Below are positions 36,950 to 52,641 of a stretch of DNA of 64,000 nucleotides, piece by piece (the stretch's first letter is position 1; every line of letters begins with the position of its first letter). The stretch lies in the sequence record LC727695.1; one strand, 5' to 3'. The notes under the pieces are model-generated. The model was not told the DNA's origin. It saw only the letters and a list, made by a program, of their open reading frames with translations, and ran no database searches. Made by a program: the position numbers and the translations under genes.

Positions 36950-39900
36950 TTAAATAACAGCACCTTTGGAAACTACCCAATTAGTACCGTCCCATAGGAG
37001 AGTAAGAATTGTTTTAGTATCGCCTAGGTCATCTACTATTAATGGAGTACCATTGTTCCACTGTAGCACTGCACTAGATAGTGTTGGCATAGCTACCTTA
37101 CCAAGTAGTACAAGAACAGCCGTTACCATACGATCAACAGGTCCATTCTCTAGTGTAATGGTTTGGTTAGCAGCAGTTTGAACCCTATAGCACTGTTGGT
37201 TAGCTGGTGTTAGAGTTAAAGCTGTACCAGTGAATGTACTTGATTTCAGACTATATACATCGAATGATTTATCTAGCTTCTTCCAAGTAATATTAGTACC
37301 AGTACGGCTACGTACCCAATCACCATCAGCGGTTACATCATTATTCGGACCTTGGAATAGAGTCCATGATTTAGCCGCAGCGTTACGTAGGAATAGTTGT
37401 CCACTAGTAGCATCAGCTTGATCAACTATAATAGTTACAGGTGTCCATTTAGAACCACTAGCTGTTTTCTCACGTACATAGTTAGTGCCATTAGCGCCTT
37501 CACTAGGTACTTCGCCAATAACTGCGGCTGGTACAGCTACCCATTCACCATTTTGCATACCCATTAGAGTATCATCGGTTTGCAGAGGTGCTACATCAAC
37601 CCAGTTACCAGCTACACGACCTTGAGGCTTAGTAGCTTGTGCAGTATCGCGTACTACATCTGAAGGAATTTCTGGGAATGTAATGGTAGCCCATTCAGTT
37701 TTACCACCTGCAATACCTTTACGAACGTATTGTGCATTGACAGTTGGATTAGGTACAGCATCAATAGCAGGTGTCGGTAGTTCAATAGCCGTCCATTCAA
37801 TAGCACCATCAGCTGTTGCTTTATGACGACCATAGAAAACACCAACCTCGGCATTTGGTACTTCATCAACAGGTAGTTCAGTCCAACCGAGTTTGTACCG
37901 AACCATTTTCTTATCGACATCTTCTGGATCAACTTCACTAACTGGAACTGACATTAGTTTGTAGAATACAACCCAGTTAGCATCTTTATACCAGACAGTG
38001 CCAGTTTTGTCGATACACCAGTCGCCACGGTTACCATCGATAGAGGTGGGTGCAGTTTGACCTTCAGGTAGAATTACCCAAGAGGATCCACGTTCACCTT
38101 TCTGACCGGTTTTACCAGGTATGCCTGGAACACCTTGTTTACCTTCAGGACCTTGTGGGCCTTCCGGACCCATAGCTAGGACACCTAGGCTTTCCCAAGT
38201 AAATGTACCTTCTGTATCAATACATACGAATACTTCTACTTGTCCTTCAGTGTTGGTGTGAATGGCAATACCTTTACCTACGTTATCAGCAGATGCAGCT
38301 GGTTTACCAGCATCATCACCAACGTAAATAATTAATAGCCCACCACCTTGTTTACCTTCAGGACCCTGAGGACCTTCAACGCCCTGAATACCTTGTTCAC
38401 CATTTAAGTCAATTGGGCCGATATAGCCATCAATCTCTTGACCTTGGTAAGTATAAAGCATCGGACCATTGTCGGTCTCAACCCAATACGAATCACCAGT
38501 AGTTAATTCAGGGTTAGTATCCTTCTTAGGTAATTGGGATACGTCGGTTAGAACACCTTTAATGTTTAAACCTTCACCCGGCTTACCTTGCGGACCTGCC
38601 ATGATACCAATACTAGTCCAGCTACTGCCGTCCATGTTAACAAATACTTCGCCCGTGGACTTAACAGCGTATGCTTTCCACTGATTCTCGGTAGTTGCTG
38701 TAGGAGGGGTATCTTCGGTTGTGTCAATTGCCGCGATGATCTGGATAGGTTCACCGACGGGACCCGGCTCGCCTTGTTTACCATCTGGCCCTTGCGGACC
38801 TTCGGGGCCTTCTTCACCTTTTGGTCCACGGTGTGTACCACTATTTACCCAATTACCATCTATCTTAACAAATAAGGTAGATGTGTCTTGTGTGAAGTAA
38901 GCTGCCTGATCAGGGGCATCTGCCGGTAGGGCTGCCTCATTGGCAACAGCACCAGTAATAACTACGTTCTTACCATGTAGACTGATTAACCATTCACCCT
39001 CAGTACCAGTGAACCCATTATCCAATGCTACTTGGAAAGCCGATTTACCTTGTGCCCCTGGCTCACCAGGTAGACCTTGATCACCGTCTTCACCTTTAGG
39101 ACCTTCAGGACCCTGAGGACCACGGAATGAACCCATGGCTGTCCATGAGATATCAACAGTCGGATCTTGGCCAGTCAGTACATAAACCGTATTGGTGGAA
39201 CGTACTGAAACACCTTGGTATTGTTCTACACCAGTGGTGGTTAATAGATCGTCAGCAGTTTCAACCGCTTTAACTACTTCTAAGTTACGACCTTGCGGAC
39301 CAGGTTCACCTTGCTTACCATCGGGACCCGGATCACCTGTGTTACCTGGTTTACCTTGTGGACCCTCAGGACCTTGGAAAGTACCTAGGTCTGACCATGC
39401 ACCTTTTACAAAGATGAATAGATGCCCTGGTTTACCAGCTTCCATAGTAACTAAGTATGCTTCTGATTCTTTAGCTACAGATGGATCAGGTAAATCAGCT
39501 GGAGATGGTAGTGAATCCTTAATGGTGAATGGCATTGCTGGTTCGCCCTGAGGACCTTCAGGACCAATATCACCATCTTCACCTTTAGGACCTTCGGGGC
39601 CCTCAGGTCCACGTTCACCCTGTGGTGTAACTGGGAACCAATCATAGTCATCAATAGTTGGATTCTCTGGCGGATTATTACCTGAGATAAGCATCCACGC
39701 CCAGAGTTGATTATTCCATGAATAAGCATCACCAGGTTTATTACTTTCAGTCTTAGGTAATTCTAAGTTATTAGGCCAACGACCACGGATAACTAGACCA
39801 GTACCATCTGGACCACGAAGTGAACCTGTTTCAACCCAACGACCTTTTACAGGGGGATCTTCATTACCTAGCGGTGATTCCCATACCCATAGCCGATCTT

Positions 39901-40213
39901 CAACGAACCAAGCATCACCGACATTATGCGTATCTAATGGTTTAATATCTTGTTCGAATGTTGCTAGATCAACATTAGCGATAATATTGATAGCTGGACC
40001 AACCGGACCAGGAGGACCTTGTTCGCCATCTTTACCTGGCGCACCATCTTCACCCTTTAATCCAGGTATAGTGACAGGATCAACGAAAGTGGTATTAAGA
40101 CCCACCCCGGTAGAAACCGGGATGTGTCCATTAACTACAGAAGTGGGTTCATCAATTGATGATACCCGTTTGGGGAGTTCCCCGTTTACATAATCTTCAA
40201 ATGCAGAAGCCAT
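36950..40213 (-). CDS. gp146: Collagen-like tail fibre protein, 1087 aa
   Basis: Many Gly-X-Y runs separated by globular modules; foldon-like repeats; C-terminal beta-sandwich ending LLWDGTNW. Confidence 0.8.
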
Positions 40214-42582
40214 TATACTACTTCCTCAAGTTCGATTTTCATCAGTCCAGTGGTATTGGATACAGCGTTTGCTGAGTCACAGTTATACCACTTATTGCCA
40301 TCCTTGATGGTGTAGGTGTCAACTTGATTTGCATCATCCGCCTTATAAGTGAAGTTTAAGCTACCAGTAGAACCTTTAGATAGGTTACTGCAACGTAGTT
40401 TACCAGTATTGGTTACTTCAGTACCAATATCAGTTTCACGGTTCGGCCAAGCAGCCACACTTAGAGTGCGGAATACAAATCCACCTAGTACATAAGTACC
40501 ACCATTTACACTATTAGCTTCAACACCAGCTAAACCTTTTAGAACCACACTGTTAAAATCGTAGGTTCCTTTAGGATCATCGTCATGTACTAGTAATGCA
40601 CGTGTCCATACCTTACCAGTGGCATCAGATTTCCAATCCTCAGTAGCCCACTTACCGCCAGGCGCATTCATGGCCGGAGCTGCACTTAGTTTCTGAGTAG
40701 AGGTTAAAGTAATGACATGACTTTGTACTTGGGTTCCAAAGTTACCACCTGAGCGAAGGCGAGCTGCTGGATAGGTAACCGTTGCAGTAGGAGCCGCATT
40801 TGCAATAGCTACAACAGTAGTAGCAGTAGCTATACTACCGTTAGCTGCACGTTTAGCAGTAATTAATAGGTTATTAGTGCTGTCGTTATAAGTACCTGAC
40901 TTATAAGTAACTACCTTAGCAATTTCTGCTTCATTTGCACTGGTTATAGTGAGCTGATCATTTGGTGAGGAATAAACCACACTATCAGCATTAGATACTG
41001 TATTGGCAACAGTAGCAGTTTCACCTACTTTAATAGCACTTTGACCAGACGGATAAGTTACTTGACCAATATTAACAACTGGGCGAAGATCGTTTAACTG
41101 CATGGTGTTAATTTTATCTTCGGAACCAGCATCACTGGAAGTAAACCATTCTGACCATGAACCAGTGGATTTCTGAACACGTACACGGAAACCATATGCC
41201 TTAGTAGTATTACCACGGTCAGCTACGTAAAGACCAGTAACCTCTAGTTCTTTAGTAGGTGCAACAGTACCACTACTTTCTTTCAGTGCACCAAAGTCAG
41301 CAATTTCGTATGCTACTATATTTTCATCAGTAACTACTTTAATTGCAACAAGGTCATCTTCTTTAAGTTCTGTTTGACCTAACGGATAACCGCCAGTAAA
41401 TACAGCACTAGTAATATTAGCGGGAGTATCGGCTAATACCTTAGTAGTGAATTTAGCCCCATCGGCGTGTTCTACAACAATATCAGCATAACCTTCAGTA
41501 GTGGGTGCACCAAGATCAATATCGGCAGTAGCAATCCACATAGGTGGATTAACGCCAGGAGTTACAACTGCATCTATGTTATTGATTTTAACACTAGGTA
41601 CATAACTAGAATGTCCAGTTATTGCATCAACGATAACTCGAACATTACTAGTAGTTGATAGGCATGACTGTACGCTGTGCCCATCGGGGGTACGCACAAT
41701 ACTACCTACGTTCTGACTGGGGTCAGTTGCTTGTACATCTTTGACGAATACACCGCCACTAATACCTTCATTTTTAGGAAGGTTCTTAAGATCAACGGTC
41801 GTTTCATCAACGCCTTCAACAATACGGATATTACCGTCATTCTTGAATGCAATGTAATCAGTTAAACTACCAATCTGGAATTCACCATTGTCATAAATAC
41901 GAATTTCAGACTCAGGTAATTCGGGTAATGCACCTTGCGTAGTGGGCGCAGAAGCGTTCTTTAGATAAGAATAACCTTCTGCTTCCATACGACCTTGTTC
42001 CATCATACGCTGAGGTATTTTATCACCAGCAGTTAAGTCGTCTTGATTTAGACGCTTATCAAACAGGAAAGCAAAGTTATGGAAAGCAGCGTTGGATGAT
42101 AATCCACCATTCTTGCCAGTTACACGCAGTACATCTTTAACTGTGTAACCTTGTTGATTTAAGAGCGACTGGAGTAGTTCAGCAGTCATGGTTGCATGCA
42201 GTGATGTTAACCATTCCTGTTCAGTACCTTGGAAACCGTTTTCCACAGCTACTTCATATGCACTCTTACCAGCATCACCTTTAAGGGATGCTATAAACTC
42301 TTCTTCAGTACCAACGAAACCTAGATCGACTGCGATTTGATAAGAAGATTTACCTTTAAGCGAATCAAGCCATTCGGTTTCAGTTCCCTGGAAACCATTT
42401 TTAACGGCAATCTCGTACGCACTAAGACCGGGTGCTCCAGTCTGTAGTTTTGACAGCAGAAACTTATAGTTATCGACTTGACCAGCTGCATCGGTATGAA
42501 TTAATTCAATATACTCGCTATCGTTAAGAATAGCTAGATCCGGCAGTTGACTGATCTTGCCTTTGTCTGTAACATTTGCCAT
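40213..42582 (-). CDS. Tail fibre/structural protein (gp145-like), 789 aa
   Basis: Three SAYE/Q-x-AV-x-x-GF-x-GTE-x-EW/F repeats; Ig-like beta-rich C-terminal half; TAATG coupling to the collagen fibre gene. Confidence 0.7.
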   Translation of the reverse strand: MANVTDKGKISQLPDLAILNDSEYIELIHTDAAGQVDNYKFLLSKLQTGAPGLSAYEIAVKNGFQGTETEWLDSLKGKSSYQIAVDLGFVGTEEEFIASLKGDAGKSAYEVAVENGFQGTEQEWLTSLHATMTAELLQSLLNQQGYTVKDVLRVTGKNGGLSSNAAFHNFAFLFDKRLNQDDLTAGDKIPQRMMEQGRMEAEGYSYLKNASAPTTQGALPELPESEIRIYDNGEFQIGSLTDYIAFKNDGNIRIVEGVDETTVDLKNLPKNEGISGGVFVKDVQATDPSQNVGSIVRTPDGHSVQSCLSTTSNVRVIVDAITGHSSYVPSVKINNIDAVVTPGVNPPMWIATADIDLGAPTTEGYADIVVEHADGAKFTTKVLADTPANITSAVFTGGYPLGQTELKEDDLVAIKVVTDENIVAYEIADFGALKESSGTVAPTKELEVTGLYVADRGNTTKAYGFRVRVQKSTGSWSEWFTSSDAGSEDKINTMQLNDLRPVVNIGQVTYPSGQSAIKVGETATVANTVSNADSVVYSSPNDQLTITSANEAEIAKVVTYKSGTYNDSTNNLLITAKRAANGSIATATTVVAIANAAPTATVTYPAARLRSGGNFGTQVQSHVITLTSTQKLSAAPAMNAPGGKWATEDWKSDATGKVWTRALLVHDDDPKGTYDFNSVVLKGLAGVEANSVNGGTYVLGGFVFRTLSVAAWPNRETDIGTEVTNTGKLRCSNLSKGSTGSLNFTYKADDANQVDTYTIKDGNKWYNCDSANAVSNTTGLMKIELEEVV

Positions 42583-45952: not shown

Positions 45953-46879
<927 letters not shown>

Positions 46880-46915
46880 TTAGTACACTGTACTATTGAG
46901 TAAATTTGTAAGAGT

Positions 46916-46935
46916 TCCCCTCCATGTGGAGGGGA
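46916..46935. terminator. GC hairpin of the conserved family
   Basis: tcccctcc-atgt-ggagggga followed by tttatgctgtt. Confidence 0.7.
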
Positions 46936-46944
46936 TTTATGCTG

Positions 46945-47433
46945 TTAAGCAAATTTTTCAGGAGCACCACGTACCATTACACAGATCCATGATTGTCCAT
47001 TATGGGAACGTTTTACTTCATGTAATTGGGATAGATGGAATACTAATCCTTCACCTTTTCCAATTAATAGTTCCTCACCATCTAAAATGAACTTAGCATC
47101 AGGTCCAATATTCCAAGCAAGAATAGTACCGGACTCGGGTTTATCTACCCAATAATTCATCTCATCTAGAAATCCATCTATTTTGGGGAAATCTAAAAAC
47201 CATACTTGTAGTGCTTTGTTAAATAGTTCTTCGCCTAAAATTGGTTTAATTTCTTTACGCTGTTTAGCAGTCCAATTAAACCATTTTGAAGTATTATAAA
47301 CACTACATGCTTTAAGGCCATTAGTGCCAACTCGCATACGGTGGCCATATGAGTCTCTAAATGAAACTTCGCCTTTAAGCTTTGTTAATGTTTTTAGTTC
47401 TGCCTTAGATAGAGTCTTAAGTTTAATTGCCAT
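46945..47433 (-). CDS. Degenerate 2OG-Fe(II)/cupin-fold protein, 162 aa
   Basis: Double-stranded beta-helix pattern with distal LHEV; the HxD position reads GFLDEM. Confidence 0.5.
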   Translation of the reverse strand: MAIKLKTLSKAELKTLTKLKGEVSFRDSYGHRMRVGTNGLKACSVYNTSKWFNWTAKQRKEIKPILGEELFNKALQVWFLDFPKIDGFLDEMNYWVDKPESGTILAWNIGPDAKFILDGEELLIGKGEGLVFHLSQLHEVKRSHNGQSWICVMVRGAPEKFA

Positions 47434-47441
47434 GTTGTACC

Positions 47442-47924
47442 CTACTCGTAGAGATATATAAGGACGTATCTTTTATTTTTAACTGGAGGGACTTCATGTG
47501 GCTCTGAACGGATTGGAAAAATAGTAGCCCTACCTGGTACATCCTGATAAAACTCACCATTGATCGTTATACCATCGCCATTGTCATTTAATGCAATAAC
47601 CATGTTGTAACGATAAACAGCTTGGTCGATGTGTTCAGGCATACCTGTACCAATTTCATATCGGTTGATTAGAACTTCGCCTAACCAAGCACCTTCTACC
47701 TTAGGTGCAATATGAAATAGTAATTCCCGTAATTCCACTGGCATTTGGTTATGACCTAAAAACCAATAATCACATTCAGTGATACCTTTGGTTGGGATAC
47801 TATTAATTTTTTTCCGATTAAACCACCAGGAATCTCCCAGTGTATCCAGATAAGATACAAGGTCAGCTGCAAATTCAGCTGAAAACACGTCCTTGGTCGA
47901 TCTTTCGTGGGCCGATAAGCTCAT
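47442..47924 (-). CDS. 2OG-Fe(II) dioxygenase superfamily protein, 160 aa
   Basis: INRYEIGTGMPEHID (HxD), PHEVPPV (distal His), KRYVLIY (Arg). Start MSLSAH at 47924 after an AGGTGG RBS. Confidence 0.8.
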   Translation of the reverse strand: MSLSAHERSTKDVFSAEFAADLVSYLDTLGDSWWFNRKKINSIPTKGITECDYWFLGHNQMPVELRELLFHIAPKVEGAWLGEVLINRYEIGTGMPEHIDQAVYRYNMVIALNDNGDGITINGEFYQDVPGRATIFPIRSEPHEVPPVKNKRYVLIYLYE

Positions 47925-48477
47925 GCAGGCCACCTGCATATCGATGTGCTTTCTCAGCGTCGAGATCTTCCCTGGATTTATAGATAACGTCTGGGCTCTC
48001 AATTAGGGCCTCCTTATGCGCGCGATTAGTTCGTTTAACAAGATCAATATAATCAAGCATTTCTTCTAGTTCATCTAACTCTTGACCATATTTTTCAGCT
48101 AGCTGTTTAATTGCACGTGCAAGGATATTAATTTGCTCAGTCACTGGATAGCGTTCAGTAATTTTGTAGGCCACTTTACTATTTAAGTGATCTTCAGTAA
48201 TCACTTGTGGCGCTTCTTCTTTAGGAACAATCTTCCAATCGGAAAGTGTAGGTTGTTTACCAGGTGTATTACTTACGACTACATCATAAGTACCCATTTC
48301 GGCTTCAACAAAAATGGTGTGCTCACGTGACTTAGCATCGAATGCATCTAAAGGTAGATAGCCTACGCTTTGTAGGAATACCTCAGAAGTACGGTTAAAC
48401 ATTAATAGTACTTTTACTTTATCTTCAGTAGGCGCAGTAGCTAAAGATAGTTCTTGGAGTGATAACGGATTATTCAT
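47875..48477 (-). CDS. Possible tail fibre assembly/chaperone-like protein, 200 aa
   Basis: TAATG coupling to the upstream fibre gene; KITERYPVTEQINIL resembles fibre-chaperone C-termini. Confidence 0.45.
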   Translation of the reverse strand: MNNPLSLQELSLATAPTEDKVKVLLMFNRTSEVFLQSVGYLPLDAFDAKSREHTIFVEAEMGTYDVVVSNTPGKQPTLSDWKIVPKEEAPQVITEDHLNSKVAYKITERYPVTEQINILARAIKQLAEKYGQELDELEEMLDYIDLVKRTNRAHKEALIESPDVIYKSREDLDAEKAHRYAGGLHELIGPRKIDQGRVFS

Positions 48478-49868
48478 TATACAAGTGCTCCAGCTCGAAT
48501 CATCCAACGCCATGTACCATTATTTCTAACTGCTACATATTGCTGGTAATAATAGGCTTCAAAGGGGGTATTAGTTCTAACACCTACAACAGCGTAAGTG
48601 CCTTCAGGATATTTGGTATTATCTGTAAACATCGTATTTAACGTGTTTAATGCTTCTGCTTCACTATTTACCTGACCTAAGGTAATGGCTTTAATCTTAT
48701 CTTTGTTCCACTCTTTAAAAGCTTCAACCCAGTCTTGCCAAGTACCATCGCTCGCTAGATAATATCTCTCAGGGTCATTTAATATTGATGCATTACCTTT
48801 ACCTAATGCATTCCATTTAAATACGCCACTAGTTACTTCTTCAGCTGGAATATCTTTTCGAACATCATTCCAGAAATTCTGATATACCTTACCTGTTCCA
48901 GTAACTGGATAACCCTGACTATTAGTAGTAGCACCAATAGTGGTCGCATTAGCAGCTTGTTCATTGACACCTAATAATGGAGCTATTTTAGAATCCATCA
49001 CTGGTTTGGTATATGATCCAACTTGGTCAGCTGTGACAACGTGTGGGTTATTGAAGTTTTTAATATGTGCTGCAAGTTTAGCCAATGTATCAATATTAAG
49101 AATACGATAAATACCACCAATTGGCATGTATTTATTATTTACATTTCTATTAACTGACTCAGCCTCAGTAGCAAAACCCCAGTTAGATATCTTATCAAGC
49201 GGTGGAATTAACTTGAATCGATCATCAGCATGCGGATTATTATAATCAGTTAAGTGTGCTGTAACTCGATCTCTATAATCATCCACAGCAGTTTTTGCAT
49301 CGGTGAGATAAACTTTATAATAATCATCGGCAGCATTATCCATGGCACTTCTACCGACCCGATAAGCGTGTGCTATTCGGTTTAATTCAGTTACCATTGT
49401 ATCTGTGCCATAAATCTGCCAATATTCATGGCCGTGAGGTGCAGGCGGATATGCATCGGGTTTACCAATAATATCATCCCAAGTGAAACTTAATTCATCT
49501 AATTCAAGTTTATCAAAAACAGCTTTAAGTTCTAATGCCGAAATACTAAAGAAACCACCAACTGCTCTATATGTAACTTGGACATTAGGACTAACCTTAG
49601 GATCAGTTACTACAACAATACCCATTACTTCTAAGCCAGTCATTTCAGATAACTGTGAATAAAGATAGGTTGTTTTATATTGATCTTTGTTTAAAGATAA
49701 GCCAGTCTTCTTATCACGTAGATTAAAGTCCTTTGTATAAAAACCACCATGTGTACACATAAGTACGCGGTGTGTTTTATTAGCAACTTGAATGAGTGTG
49801 TGGTCCTCATCTACAATGTAATTAGAAGCCAATTTAGCTTTTAGATCTAATGGTAAAAAAGTAATCAT
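48477..49868 (-). CDS. Tail fibre paralogue (gp135-like)
   Basis: H..D/N..NPH repeats; N-terminal domain shared with the gp131/133/134-like ORFs; start at 49868 by TAATG overlap. Confidence 0.75.
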   Translation of the reverse strand: MITFLPLDLKAKLASNYIVDEDHTLIQVANKTHRVLMCTHGGFYTKDFNLRDKKTGLSLNKDQYKTTYLYSQLSEMTGLEVMGIVVVTDPKVSPNVQVTYRAVGGFFSISALELKAVFDKLELDELSFTWDDIIGKPDAYPPAPHGHEYWQIYGTDTMVTELNRIAHAYRVGRSAMDNAADDYYKVYLTDAKTAVDDYRDRVTAHLTDYNNPHADDRFKLIPPLDKISNWGFATEAESVNRNVNNKYMPIGGIYRILNIDTLAKLAAHIKNFNNPHVVTADQVGSYTKPVMDSKIAPLLGVNEQAANATTIGATTNSQGYPVTGTGKVYQNFWNDVRKDIPAEEVTSGVFKWNALGKGNASILNDPERYYLASDGTWQDWVEAFKEWNKDKIKAITLGQVNSEAEALNTLNTMFTDNTKYPEGTYAVVGVRTNTPFEAYYYQQYVAVRNNGTWRWMIRAGALV

Positions 49869-51241
49869 TATGCCGGTTCCCCTATATTGGTCCACGTTGA
49901 TCCCACTTTACGTAAGAATAAAGTATTCCTATAGGAAGTAGCTGTTGTACCGTTACCATGTCCAATCACGAATTCTTGATCGTAATGGCAAATAGCTAAC
50001 GAACCAGGCCACCATTGTTCAGGATCTGAGAAGTATGTGTTATGGAAGGCAATTGCTTCTTGAATAGATTTAAAGTTGGTGTTATTCCAGTGGACCATCG
50101 TCCCTGTTTTTTGGAAGCGATTAAATATAAAACCGAAATGAGTCCATTGACCATTAGGCATCAATGTCCAATCACGGCCTGGCCAGGTAGCTGAATTACC
50201 AATCCTACCAGGTGCTAGTCGACCAGTCGTCAATACACTTAAAGGCATTTTAGCACGTACTGTTTCACCCATGCTATAAACATCTTGACCAAATAAAAGT
50301 TTAGACGTATTGGCTGTTTTACCTTTATCTAATTTTTGATTTAGTAAAATATTAGCTTGAGTAACAGTATACGTATTTAATTGTTCAGCCGTTACCCTGT
50401 GTGGGTTAGTGGTGACATCATTAACGTGTGCCAGATATTGAACTGTATAATTGGTATCAACTGATAACTTCATTGACCATGGCGTAGCATAGACATTCAT
50501 GATAGCGCCATTTGGCTGTTTGGCTTGTGTTTCAGTTGCAATGCCAGCATTATAAACATTACCTAATGCCACTTGCCCTTTACGTGTCTGGTGTGGGTTA
50601 GTGGTGGTATCATTGATGTGTGTAGTAAGTCGTGCTTCAATTGTATTAAGATCAGCTTCTATTAGACTTAACTGATATTTAAACTCATCTAAAATGGAGT
50701 CATATGAGTCTGATGAGCTTTTCTTTAATAAGTCAGTTATTTCTTTTAACTTAACAACTCTAGGCGTAAAACCATAAAGTTCCCAATAGGCATGCATATG
50801 TCCATTAGGTTTAAATTGGTCAGGAATATCTAAAATATTAGACCAATGTGGTTTACGGGTATTATTTAAAAGAGCGTTAGCATGCTCAGATATGGAAGGG
50901 GAAAGGTTACAGTATATACCACCGCACATCTGAGCATCAATGTAAATATCCTCGTGGACATCTTGTTTTGTAATAACAATTACTGAACACGCTTCAAGTC
51001 CAGTCTTCTCGATTACTTCTGGATTAATACCAGTACACTGATAATCCATTTCTGGATTTAACTCATTCTGCCTACCATCTCTGATAACCATTCCTTTAGT
51101 GTAAAAGTAACCCTTATCCATCACGATGATGCGATAGGGGAATCCTTTCTGTTTTGCTAGTGAATGGTATTCACCCTTTGTTCGGTTACTATAACTCTCT
51201 CCAGTTTCATCAAATGGAAGAGGTAAAAGTAATGGATTCAT
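49868..51241 (-). CDS. Tail fibre paralogue (gp134-like), 457 aa
   Basis: LPFDETGE N-terminus; NPHQTRKGQV and NPHRVTAEQL repeats. Confidence 0.75.
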   Translation of the reverse strand: MNPLLLPLPFDETGESYSNRTKGEYHSLAKQKGFPYRIIVMDKGYFYTKGMVIRDGRQNELNPEMDYQCTGINPEVIEKTGLEACSVIVITKQDVHEDIYIDAQMCGGIYCNLSPSISEHANALLNNTRKPHWSNILDIPDQFKPNGHMHAYWELYGFTPRVVKLKEITDLLKKSSSDSYDSILDEFKYQLSLIEADLNTIEARLTTHINDTTTNPHQTRKGQVALGNVYNAGIATETQAKQPNGAIMNVYATPWSMKLSVDTNYTVQYLAHVNDVTTNPHRVTAEQLNTYTVTQANILLNQKLDKGKTANTSKLLFGQDVYSMGETVRAKMPLSVLTTGRLAPGRIGNSATWPGRDWTLMPNGQWTHFGFIFNRFQKTGTMVHWNNTNFKSIQEAIAFHNTYFSDPEQWWPGSLAICHYDQEFVIGHGNGTTATSYRNTLFLRKVGSTWTNIGEPA

Positions 51242-51252
51242 CTAAACTATCC

Positions 51253-52641
51253 TTATGGAATTACCCAGCCACCTTGTGAACGGAAACACACGTAGTTAGG
51301 AGTATAATCAACGAAAATCAATCCGTTACCAGCTGCCTGGATTTTCTGTTCTTTAATAGTGAAGAATACAGTAGATCCAATAGGCCATGCATCTGGATTA
51401 GTGAAGTTAGTTCTACAGAAATCTAATGCTGCTTGCACGGATGGTTGTAATCCTAGTGCATAAAACTTTAACTTAACCGGATATGAATACTCTGTGGCTA
51501 ATTGATCAAAGTGTGTAAAAATACCATTCCCACGGAGTGGTGCTTTCCATTGTCCCATTGCCCCGGAACCAATCCGATTTATATTGATGACATTACTCTG
51601 GCCATCGCCAGCTGTAAAGTTCACGTCTGTGTCAAAGTTCTTACGCATCCACCAAATAAGATCGCTATAACCCATTAAAGTAGCAGTTGGTTGCCCTTTA
51701 GGTTTATAATAAACCATATTAGTATTAGCTACTGTATCAGTCTTTAAATATTTACCAGTAATTCGTGAATCAAAATCACTTTTCAAATACGACTGTACAT
51801 GCGTATTTTTGACTTTATGTGGATTATCACGGCGAGCTATGTGGGCATTAAGTGGTTTTATAGCTATTTCATCTAATACGCCATATGCTAACTGCGGTGT
51901 TAGATAATGTGCATTAGATTGACCTAGTTGAGCAATGGCTGGAGTAGCCAATGGAAAGTTATTAACTAAACCTAGTTCAACATTAGTTGGGGTAATCTTG
52001 TGTGGATTAGCTTTATCTTGAATATGTTTTTCTAGGCGATCATTAAATTTCTTTAAGAACTCATCATAAATCTCTTTAACTTTACTACGGTATTCATCTT
52101 CACCGCTTGTATCACCAGCCATGAGTGCCTGTGTTATCCACTCCATCTCGTTATTATAAGGCTGATACGTATCAAGATGCCATCGTTCGCCAACTAACTC
52201 ACCGTCTTTCCAATATGGTTCGTTACCAGTGTAATCGAGATCTTTTGGCTTTGGCTTACCATTTGTTTTCCACCAGTTAATATAATCGTCGATAACTGTG
52301 AAACTAAACGCTAGATCACCGCCTACCATGTGAGCTGAAGTATACACTATTGGTGTACTAGGTGTTTTTAAGAAAACAATTGCTGAACATATTTCTTGAC
52401 CGACATACGCACTAGCATCTTTGTGATAATAAGTAACAATATAATCAATATCTTTAACTAAACGATTATATTTACCATCATAAACTTCTAACCCTTTTGT
52501 ATAGAATCCACCATGATATAACTTGATGATTCTATAGTCGAATCCCTGATACTGAACTAGAGTATGAGGCTCGCTACCAATGAAACAATCTGGATTTGTA
52601 CCTAATGGATCAAATGGTAATTGTAAAATAGGATTATACAT
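51253..52641 (-). CDS. Tail fibre paralogue (gp133-like), 462 aa
   Basis: LPFDPLGTNP N-terminus; NPH repeats. Confidence 0.75.
   Translation of the reverse strand: MYNPILQLPFDPLGTNPDCFIGSEPHTLVQYQGFDYRIIKLYHGGFYTKGLEVYDGKYNRLVKDIDYIVTYYHKDASAYVGQEICSAIVFLKTPSTPIVYTSAHMVGGDLAFSFTVIDDYINWWKTNGKPKPKDLDYTGNEPYWKDGELVGERWHLDTYQPYNNEMEWITQALMAGDTSGEDEYRSKVKEIYDEFLKKFNDRLEKHIQDKANPHKITPTNVELGLVNNFPLATPAIAQLGQSNAHYLTPQLAYGVLDEIAIKPLNAHIARRDNPHKVKNTHVQSYLKSDFDSRITGKYLKTDTVANTNMVYYKPKGQPTATLMGYSDLIWWMRKNFDTDVNFTAGDGQSNVININRIGSGAMGQWKAPLRGNGIFTHFDQLATEYSYPVKLKFYALGLQPSVQAALDFCRTNFTNPDAWPIGSTVFFTIKEQKIQAAGNGLIFVDYTPNYVCFRSQGGWVIP

Follow-up and report, generated by a model that had tools for sequence, protein, structure and literature searches.

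Three adjacent genes of a phiKZ-type jumbo phage of Pseudomonas aeruginosa, PHIKZ136, PHIKZ137, and PHIKZ138, form a cassette that is tied to one tail-fiber tip domain: as we show here, the tip domain and the cassette predict each other. The genes fill exactly positions 46945-48477 of a 64,000-nucleotide (nt) stretch of sequence record LC727695.1 (“the window”), and all genes of interest are on its minus strand. The product of PHIKZ137 (gp137) is predicted to be an Fe(II)/2-oxoglutarate (2OG) oxygenase, and it is accompanied by a paralog with a degenerate catalytic site and by a third small protein. Because the trio always accompanies fibers with one tip domain, it is probably a fiber-tip module rather than a modifier of collagen or DNA. 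Our tentative reading is that PHIKZ136-138 is an accessory module, itself not part of the virion, that hydroxylates or otherwise matures the fiber tip (in phiKZ, the tip of gp133-135).

A sequence-only reading of this DNA had proposed that an active and an inactive enzyme encoded here modify a fiber of the virion, and had pointed to the collagen-like fiber gp146 as the target. Two parts of that proposal stand: there is an active-looking/inactive-looking pair, and it has a conserved tie to tail fibers. What is not supported is the choice of fiber: the data point to the tip domain of gp133-135, and not to gp146, as the partner of the pair.

The cassette and a fiber tip domain predict each other

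We used hidden Markov models (HMMs) to search 58 loci: 50 from IMG/VR, together with the loci of phiKZ, 201phi2-1, phiPA3, QdP_Psa3, Milchi, and a T4-like metagenomic contig. Wherever there is a gp137 homolog (58/58 loci), all three genes are present, adjacent, and on the same strand, with the gene order 136-138-137 in three of the 58. In phiKZ, 201phi2-1, and phiPA3, the trio is located 3′ of the last fiber paralog. Phages outside this group have it too: the unrelated 115-kilobase (kb) phage QdP_Psa3, T4-like Milchi, and one T4-like contig from a metagenome. Taken together, the carriers span at least six fiber architectures and include non-jumbo as well as T4-like Pseudomonas phages. Homologs of gp137 occur in 72 records, all of them Pseudomonas phages, and every cultured carrier infects Pseudomonas. 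Genomes of bacteria and archaea (185,579 in all) essentially lack the module, as only one 633-bp fragment was found; the cassette is therefore not a prophage or tailocin module. In the loci examined, the gp137 gene is always in a fiber locus and never among replication or nucleotide-metabolism genes.

The rarer gene order (136, PHIKZ138-like, 137) belongs to one lineage (L053:5758-7343, L054, and L055; a 235-kb contig), which also has the most divergent proteins seen.

The gene upstream of the cassette is consistently a fiber gene. Upstream sequence is readable in 54 loci, and in each of them a large open reading frame (ORF) ends ≤46 nt from PHIKZ136; the 10 upstream genes taken as representatives of non-chimallivirus loci all match tail-fiber PHROGs. 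These upstream fibers fall into eight clusters with unrelated shafts. BLAST matches between clusters are confined to the last ~100 residues, a region that can be aligned across lineages and that corresponds to a shared C-terminal tip domain of ~110 amino acids (aa). The alignment shows that gp133, gp134, and gp135 have this domain in common. Searches for the domain with tblastn and with word-indexed methods returned close relatives only. We describe it with an HMM that was seeded from non-chimallivirus tips only and iterated four times, converging on 108 ORFs. In every one of these ORFs (108/108), the domain is at the extreme C-terminus. Within the window, the HMM matches gp133, gp134, and gp135 and nothing else, with E-values from 1e-27 to 4e-21. 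All 54 of the upstream genes bear the tip domain; half of the loci (27) have one tip gene, and the other 27 have three. The most conserved columns of the domain are a Trp (84/87), a Thr or Ser (82/87), a Gly (75/87), a Pro (72/87), and an Asn (71/87).

A control set of 80 fiber loci was obtained by scanning viral contigs; the tip alignment used as the query keyed on a generic fiber motif upstream of the tip. Thirteen of these loci have both the tip and the cassette, 67 have neither, and none has one without the other (tip only, 0; cassette only, 0; Fisher P = 3e-15 for loci that are not independent, some of them repeating earlier contigs). The same association is seen within single loci: in L039-type phages, only one of four consecutive fiber genes has the tip domain, and it is the one that adjoins the cassette.

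The uncultured L039 (L039:1374-10671) and its relatives L033, L036, and L046 encode four fiber genes with a common N-terminal anchor (PHROGs 15511 and 14394); the distal parts of the fibers differ, and the cassette sits after the third gene. In T4-like Pseudomonas phages (L005:4844-5389 and L006:4490-5017), a protein of 175-181 aa consists of a collar-fiber-like N-terminus and the tip domain. In L006, this short tip protein comes directly after a gp11 homolog, where T4 has gp12. In these phages, the three-gene cassette follows the short tip protein and is itself followed by a gp13 homolog.

gp137 has the predicted fold and the ligand residues of a protein-hydroxylase-type oxygenase

The sequence family of gp137 and a structural model show the fold of a protein-hydroxylase-type oxygenase together with a full, invariant set of Fe(II)/2OG ligands. 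The sequence-only reading had described an oxygenase with an intact HxD...H...R set, and this description is correct. H103-x-D105, H148, and R157 (in the 165-aa numbering) are invariant in all 24 aligned sequences and in all 48 unique homologs from the fetched loci, even though the homologs share only 30-60% overall identity. R157 sits nine residues past the distal His, at the position of the basic residue that binds the C5 carboxylate of 2OG.

Sequence comparisons place gp137 close to the threshold of a known family. The match to Pfam PF13640, the prolyl-4-hydroxylase (P4H)-type 2OG-Fe(II) oxygenases, has an E-value of 2e-5 and scores 25.9 bits against a cut-off of 27 bits; of 64 gp137 homolog clusters, nine have a precomputed PF13640 match. 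For the AlkB family, PF13532, the corresponding values are 0.11 and 13 bits against a cut-off of 31. Sequence searches of the PDB with single proteins gave no match, and profile searches gave only weak matches to cupins and to ALKBH8 (E = 0.018 for ALKBH8 with the gp137 profile).

The AlphaFold2 model of gp137 has a mean predicted local distance difference test score (pLDDT) of 91, a predicted template modeling score (pTM) of 0.87, and a double-stranded beta-helix core. Foldseek returned >250 matches at E ≤ 1e-3, and the best 50 are all 2OG oxygenases. Almost all of these 50 are protein hydroxylases; the others are a PiuC-like protein and a few small-molecule and unassigned 2OG oxygenases. The best matches in the PDB are PHD2, LH3, the PBCV-1 collagen prolyl hydroxylase, the Pseudomonas putida prolyl hydroxylase with EF-Tu, and mimivirus L230. 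Neither AlkB nor TET/JBP is among the best 50. When viral models are considered, the neighbors of gp137 are 2OG oxygenases of cyanophages and giant viruses. gp137 is a single domain of 160 aa and has neither a peptide-substrate-binding nor a glycosyltransferase accessory domain.

The current annotation of this family is different. gp137 matches PHROG 2297 (E = 1e-55), which is labeled “DNA endonuclease”, and RefSeq has copied the label; there is also a weak match to PHROG 61. We found no nuclease domain or motif in gp137 in Pfam, NCBIfam, or the PDB, and the name is unsupported by sequence or fold. Some records already identify gp137 homologs as 2OG oxygenases, namely the annotation of phage Churi and the UniProt name of the Psa21 homolog. 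In phiPA3, gene 156 (L003:5890-6495) is annotated as encoding 105 aa, while both the ORF and the tblastn match extend over all 160 aa of the oxygenase; the start given in the annotation seems to lie too far downstream.

The partners of gp137

PHIKZ138 is a paralog of gp137, although BLASTP finds no similarity between the two, and the relationship is visible only by profile and structure comparison. Aligned with hhalign, the two families match with 93% probability (E = 3.5e-7) over 130 columns. The AlphaFold2 model of PHIKZ138 (pLDDT 97) has the 2OG-oxygenase fold, and the gp137 model matches the phiPA3 ortholog of PHIKZ138 with a template modeling (TM) score of 0.70. Foldseek matches of PHIKZ138 include ALKBH7, ALKBH5, AlkB, PiuC-like proteins, and PHD2. 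The sequence-only reading had noted a second beta-helix protein without HxD; the motif is indeed absent, and “beta-helix” should read double-stranded beta-helix (i.e., jelly roll). Thus, PHIKZ138 has the fold of an Fe(II)/2OG oxygenase but not the iron triad plus Arg. The columns aligned to His-x-Asp are variable, the distal His (H138) is kept in 43 of 45 sequences, and the column of the 2OG-binding Arg contains Q in 18, R in five, and other residues in 22 of the 45. The family has invariant residues of its own (R34, S44, Y46, and D90; 45/45), and it is therefore a conserved pseudo-enzyme with its own pocket rather than a decaying copy. On the evidence of alignments and models, PHIKZ138 is a structural relative and is not predicted to be an active oxygenase.

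An exhaustive search yielded 73 representatives of the PHIKZ138 family, whereas a word-indexed search returned only its own cluster. Two long proteins, P0107 and P0131, were considered as possible PHIKZ138 fusions and rejected as spurious, as neither matches the family HMM. Seven homologs of 207-229 aa (P0116, P0117, P0120, P0123, P0126, P0127, and P0133) have a ~50-residue insertion in the jelly roll, between model positions ~120 and ~121.

PHIKZ136, the first gene of the cassette, has no relative in Pfam, NCBIfam, or the PDB. In alignments of its family, F-N is invariant close to the N-terminus, and an acidic-Gly-Gly...Glu..Gly motif is conserved at the C-terminus. The sequence-only reading had called it chaperone-like. 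In support of that term, PHIKZ136 lies directly downstream of a fiber gene and is exchanged with the C-terminal domain of the fiber. It showed no significant match to the chaperone families Tfa, gpU, gp38, or gp57A in Pfam, in PHROG functions, or in the PDB. PHIKZ136 is possibly a fiber chaperone or adaptor.

Gene layout and neighboring genes

The window is 99.4-100% identical to phiKZ-type phages. Bases 46800-48600, which include the cassette, are 100% identical to vB_PA32_GUMS, Brmt, and one other phage, and 99.4% identical to phiKZ. The order of features on the minus strand is fiber paralogs gp131-135, PHIKZ136, PHIKZ137, PHIKZ138, a hairpin, and gp139 (Table 1). The longest ORF of gp135 extends to 49895, and the protein matches PHROG 2163 and several tail-fiber PHROGs.

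Table 1. Positions of the fiber genes, the cassette, and nearby features in the window
Feature	Positions	Strand	Evidence and remarks
gp146, collagen-like fiber	36950-40213	-	1087 aa; Pfam Collagen, E = 3e-23
gp139	45953-46849	-	DUF7208
GC-rich hairpin ending the fiber and cassette block	46916-46935	-	8-bp stem; folding energy compared with shuffles
PHIKZ138, oxygenase paralog	46945-47433	-	162 aa; hhalign, AlphaFold2, Foldseek
PHIKZ137 (gp137), predicted Fe(II)/2OG oxygenase	47442-47924	-	160 aa; alternative start 47939; PF13640, AlphaFold2, Foldseek
PHIKZ136, first cassette gene	47875-48477	-	200 aa; directly 3′ of the tip-bearing fiber
gp135, tail-fiber paralog adjoining the cassette	48477-49868	-	Tip domain 48492-48827, HMM E = 3.9e-21
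gp134, tail-fiber paralog	49868-51241	-	Tip domain 49880-50224, HMM E = 1.6e-25; alignment with gp133 and gp135
gp133, tail-fiber paralog	51253-52641	-	Tip domain 51256-51594, HMM E = 1.4e-27; alignment with gp134 and gp135

All features described in the sequence-only reading exist and are on the minus strand, and the genes are closely packed. The start of PHIKZ136 overlaps the stop of gp135 by 1 nt; PHIKZ136 and PHIKZ137 overlap by 50 nt, and a gap of 8 nt separates PHIKZ137 from PHIKZ138. In the 50-nt overlap (47875-47924), the 3′ end of PHIKZ136 and the 5′ end of PHIKZ137 are read in different frames. A corresponding overlap is present in 201phi2-1, and the two genes overlap by 35 nt in QdP_Psa3 and by 4 nt in Milchi. 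The overlap across loci suggests translational coupling of PHIKZ136 and PHIKZ137.

The hairpin begins 10 nt past the last stop codon of the cassette and has a folding energy of -18.9 kcal/mol, compared with -8.6 kcal/mol for shuffled sequences (z = -4.06). It had been described as the one terminator that closes the locus. An 8-bp GC hairpin is indeed located 3′ of the last gene, but it is not a textbook intrinsic terminator because the T-run, in a pattern scan, is on the opposite (plus) strand only. Sites found in a scan for sigma-70 promoters were rarer than in shuffled sequence, and such a scan is uninformative for a phage with its own RNA polymerases.

Further along the same strand, gp146 shows the greatest variability among the genes here: 100% identity is seen only with its counterpart in Brmt, and identity to those of other phiKZ isolates is ~95%, while its neighboring genes are >99% identical among those isolates. 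The protein has 1087 aa here versus 1093 aa in phiKZ, and the local GC fraction is 0.47 versus ~0.37. This pattern suggests repeat-driven variation or exchange. The adjacent gp145 (40213-42582, minus strand) has a stop that overlaps the start of gp146. RefSeq names it “tail sheath”, and other annotations name it “tail assembly protein”; Pfam yields no match, and the “tail sheath” label looks doubtful.

Virion status and previous work

The record of phage 201phi2-1 notes that gp216-220, gp224, gp226-228, and gp230 were detected in virions by mass spectrometry. Unlike these neighbors, the cassette proteins gp221-223 carry no virion mass-spectrometry note in the record. A 2026 atlas of phiKZ, based on electron cryomicroscopy, identified 40 virion proteins (PMC13250141). 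It places gp131, gp133, gp134, and gp135 in a hetero-hexameric fiber base and gp139 in the baseplate; the fibers are partly resolved, and their distal parts could not be modeled (PMC13250141). The atlas never mentions gp136 or gp137 (PMC13250141). In a 2026 annotation paper, PHD-like 2OG oxygenases are described as widespread among marine phages (PMC12774648). We found no description in the literature searched of the paired pseudo-enzyme, the three-gene cassette, or the one-to-one link with a tip domain.

A possible mechanism and its alternatives

If the cassette does mature the fiber tip, gp137 would act late in infection and, with Fe(II), 2OG, and O2, hydroxylate a residue of the freshly synthesized tip. 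The best candidate target residues would be the conserved Pro of a P-x-G-T/S motif or the Asn of a G-N-G motif. PHIKZ138 would be a non-catalytic partner that holds or presents the substrate, or that regulates the enzyme, and PHIKZ136 would be a chaperone or adaptor. Modification of the tip could help its folding, its trimerization, or its binding to a receptor on Pseudomonas, and none of the three proteins would stay in the particle. The most explicit form of this mechanism, in which a complex of all three proteins hydroxylates the conserved Pro or Asn of the receptor-binding tip before assembly, is conceivable, but we consider it rather doubtful. The hydroxylation chemistry is something we infer, because no one has observed it.

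Several points weigh against tip maturation by the cassette. The substrate is assigned from gene neighborhood alone, and the term “chaperone” for PHIKZ136 comes solely from where its gene lies. In structural comparisons, the best matches to PHIKZ138 belong to the AlkB family. A one-step hhalign comparison of chimallivirus tips with the other tips is weak (65%), becoming strong only by iteration, and the Fisher P-value for the control set, computed from phylogenetically related loci, makes the association look stronger than it is. Absence from virion proteomes carries little weight as a negative; gp139 is not flagged as structural by RefSeq, yet it is in the baseplate. Lastly, the literature searched contained neither a report of a hydroxylated residue in any phage fiber nor anything relevant on the PHIKZ136-138 genes.

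The chief alternative is that the trio consists mainly of non-catalytic factors for tip assembly (i.e., chaperones for folding or trimerization, or transient caps), with the oxygenase chemistry being dispensable or minor. The synteny supports this explanation just as it supports tip maturation. The layout mirrors the pairs of fiber and cognate chaperone found in other phages, such as lambda Stf/Tfa, Mu S/U, and T4 gp37/gp38, and one jelly-roll protein of the trio is strongly conserved despite having no catalytic residues. However, the invariance of all four ligand residues of gp137 among such divergent homologs is hard to explain without catalysis, and there is no similarity to the known Tfa, gp38, and gp57A families; we regard a mainly non-catalytic role as unlikely. 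Another explanation keeps the chemistry and changes the substrate to a host protein (e.g., a Pseudomonas translation factor, which is what the prolyl hydroxylase of the host itself acts on) or a small molecule (a siderophore or a nucleoside-type compound), so that the fiber locus would be no more than a convenient late operon. It fits the structural neighbors of gp137, which include the P. putida prolyl hydroxylase with EF-Tu, PiuC-like proteins, PolD, and PasI, as well as the restriction of cultured carriers to Pseudomonas hosts. The one-to-one link with the tip domain, across lineages with different organization, would be left unexplained, as would the obligatory partner genes, and we consider a host or small-molecule substrate quite improbable.

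The collagen-like fiber proposed earlier as the target does exist: gp146 is 6.7 kb away and contains seven Gly-X-Y runs of 6-10 triplets (13.2% Gly and 8.7% Pro). A Pro in the Y position is the site at which collagen prolyl-4-hydroxylases act, and the 61 triplets of gp146 have 12 Pro and five Lys in that position. The PBCV-1 collagen prolyl hydroxylase, human LH3, and mimivirus L230, all structural neighbors of gp137, would also be compatible with gp137 acting as a collagen prolyl or lysyl hydroxylase on gp146. The predicted co-occurrence of oxygenase and collagen-fiber genes is, however, not observed. Collagen proteins like gp146 are found in 280 phage records from many genera, as opposed to 72 Pseudomonas-phage records for gp137, with no covariation between the two. 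In carriers that are not chimalliviruses, the ±6-8 kb around the cassette contain no Gly-X-Y run, and the only such run in the complete QdP_Psa3 genome is antisense to an annotated gene, leaving none in a real gene. Even among 12 chimallivirus relatives, 10 have no Y-position Pro in their collagen runs, and Y-position Lys is inconstant, being absent in some. Given the mismatch in distribution, collagen hydroxylation cannot be the conserved function of the cassette; it may be a side activity in phiKZ itself. In addition, gp137 lacks a peptide-substrate-binding domain, and prokaryotic collagens are reported to be stable without hydroxyproline (work cited in PMC3368898). A cassette that serves mainly to hydroxylate gp146 thus seems highly improbable to us. 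We give least credence to a nucleic-acid oxygenase, the kind of alternative that the sequence-only reading had named; it would repair or demethylate the DNA or RNA of the phage or the host in the manner of AlkB, or hydroxylate bases in it. The points in its favor are the database label “DNA endonuclease / nucleotide metabolism” (“DNA endonuclease” in PHROG 2297 and RefSeq), the best structural matches of PHIKZ138 (ALKBH7, ALKBH5, and AlkB), and the weak ALKBH8 match of the gp137 profile. Against it, gp137 has no nuclease motif or family match, its best structural matches are protein hydroxylases with no AlkB or TET/JBP among the top 50, and its gene keeps to fiber loci; moreover, the AlkB-like partner is the one without catalytic residues.

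Implications

If a three-protein complex does hydroxylate the tip, no earlier case of a bacteriophage virion protein being hydroxylated by an enzyme would exist, and a new class of fiber maturation would be defined, in which a module of tip and enzyme moves between unrelated Pseudomonas phages. phiKZ is a model jumbo phage and a therapy candidate. Should its tips need maturation that consumes O2, iron, and 2OG, fiber function would depend on the metabolic state of the host, tips expressed alone might misfold, and receptor-binding modules of Pseudomonas phages would best be compared as units made up of the tip domain and its three helper genes. The analysis also corrects the propagated “DNA endonuclease” annotation and, for one family among the many phage 2OG oxygenases of unknown function, offers a concrete hypothesis about the substrate that can be tested.

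Comparison with known systems

The closest enzymes to gp137 are prolyl hydroxylases of the PHD/P4H type (the PF13640 clan), including PHD2, P. putida PPHD, which acts on EF-Tu, and PBCV-1 vCPH. Like gp137, they have a double-stranded beta-helix core and a His-x-Asp...His triad with an Arg nine residues past the distal His, and they are its best Foldseek matches, with E-values of about 1e-5 to 1e-6 and TM scores of 0.5-0.68. gp137 differs from them in being a minimal 160-aa core without a substrate-binding extension, in sharing only 12-19% sequence identity with them, and in always being accompanied by a disabled paralog and a third protein. Among phage proteins, the 2OG-Fe(II) oxygenases of cyanophages and other marine phages (PHROG 61) are similarly small and of unknown substrate, and they are structural neighbors of gp137, but they belong to a sequence family different from that of gp137 (PHROG 2297); in the literature searched, neither fiber-tip linkage nor a paired pseudo-enzyme was found reported for them.

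Giant viruses provide a precedent for a virus-encoded 2OG oxygenase that is thought to modify the surface fibers of the virus itself. These fiber hydroxylases (mimivirus L230, with human LH3 as the prototype) are structural neighbors of gp137. However, their substrates are repeats of the collagen type, and the enzymes occur as fusions with glycosyltransferase domains, whereas the phiKZ cassette has no glycosyltransferase. The organization of the cassette has an analog in the P3H1-CRTAP-cyclophilin B complex, in which a hydroxylase, a non-catalytic partner, and a chaperone act together on one site of a fibrous trimeric protein (PMC3900401). The analogy is one of organization only. There is no homology beyond the oxygenase fold, and CRTAP resembles the non-catalytic part of P3H1, while it is the catalytic fold itself that PHIKZ138 duplicates.

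The last comparison is with the fiber chaperones of other phages: lambda Tfa, Mu U, P2 G, and T4 gp38/gp57A. These proteins have no sequence or profile similarity to the cassette, and the known chaperones are neither oxygenases nor trios. In genetic arrangement, however, the two systems are alike: fiber chaperones, like the cassette proteins, are small, non-virion or tip-associated, and encoded directly after the fiber gene, and they are exchanged together with the C-terminal domain of the fiber.

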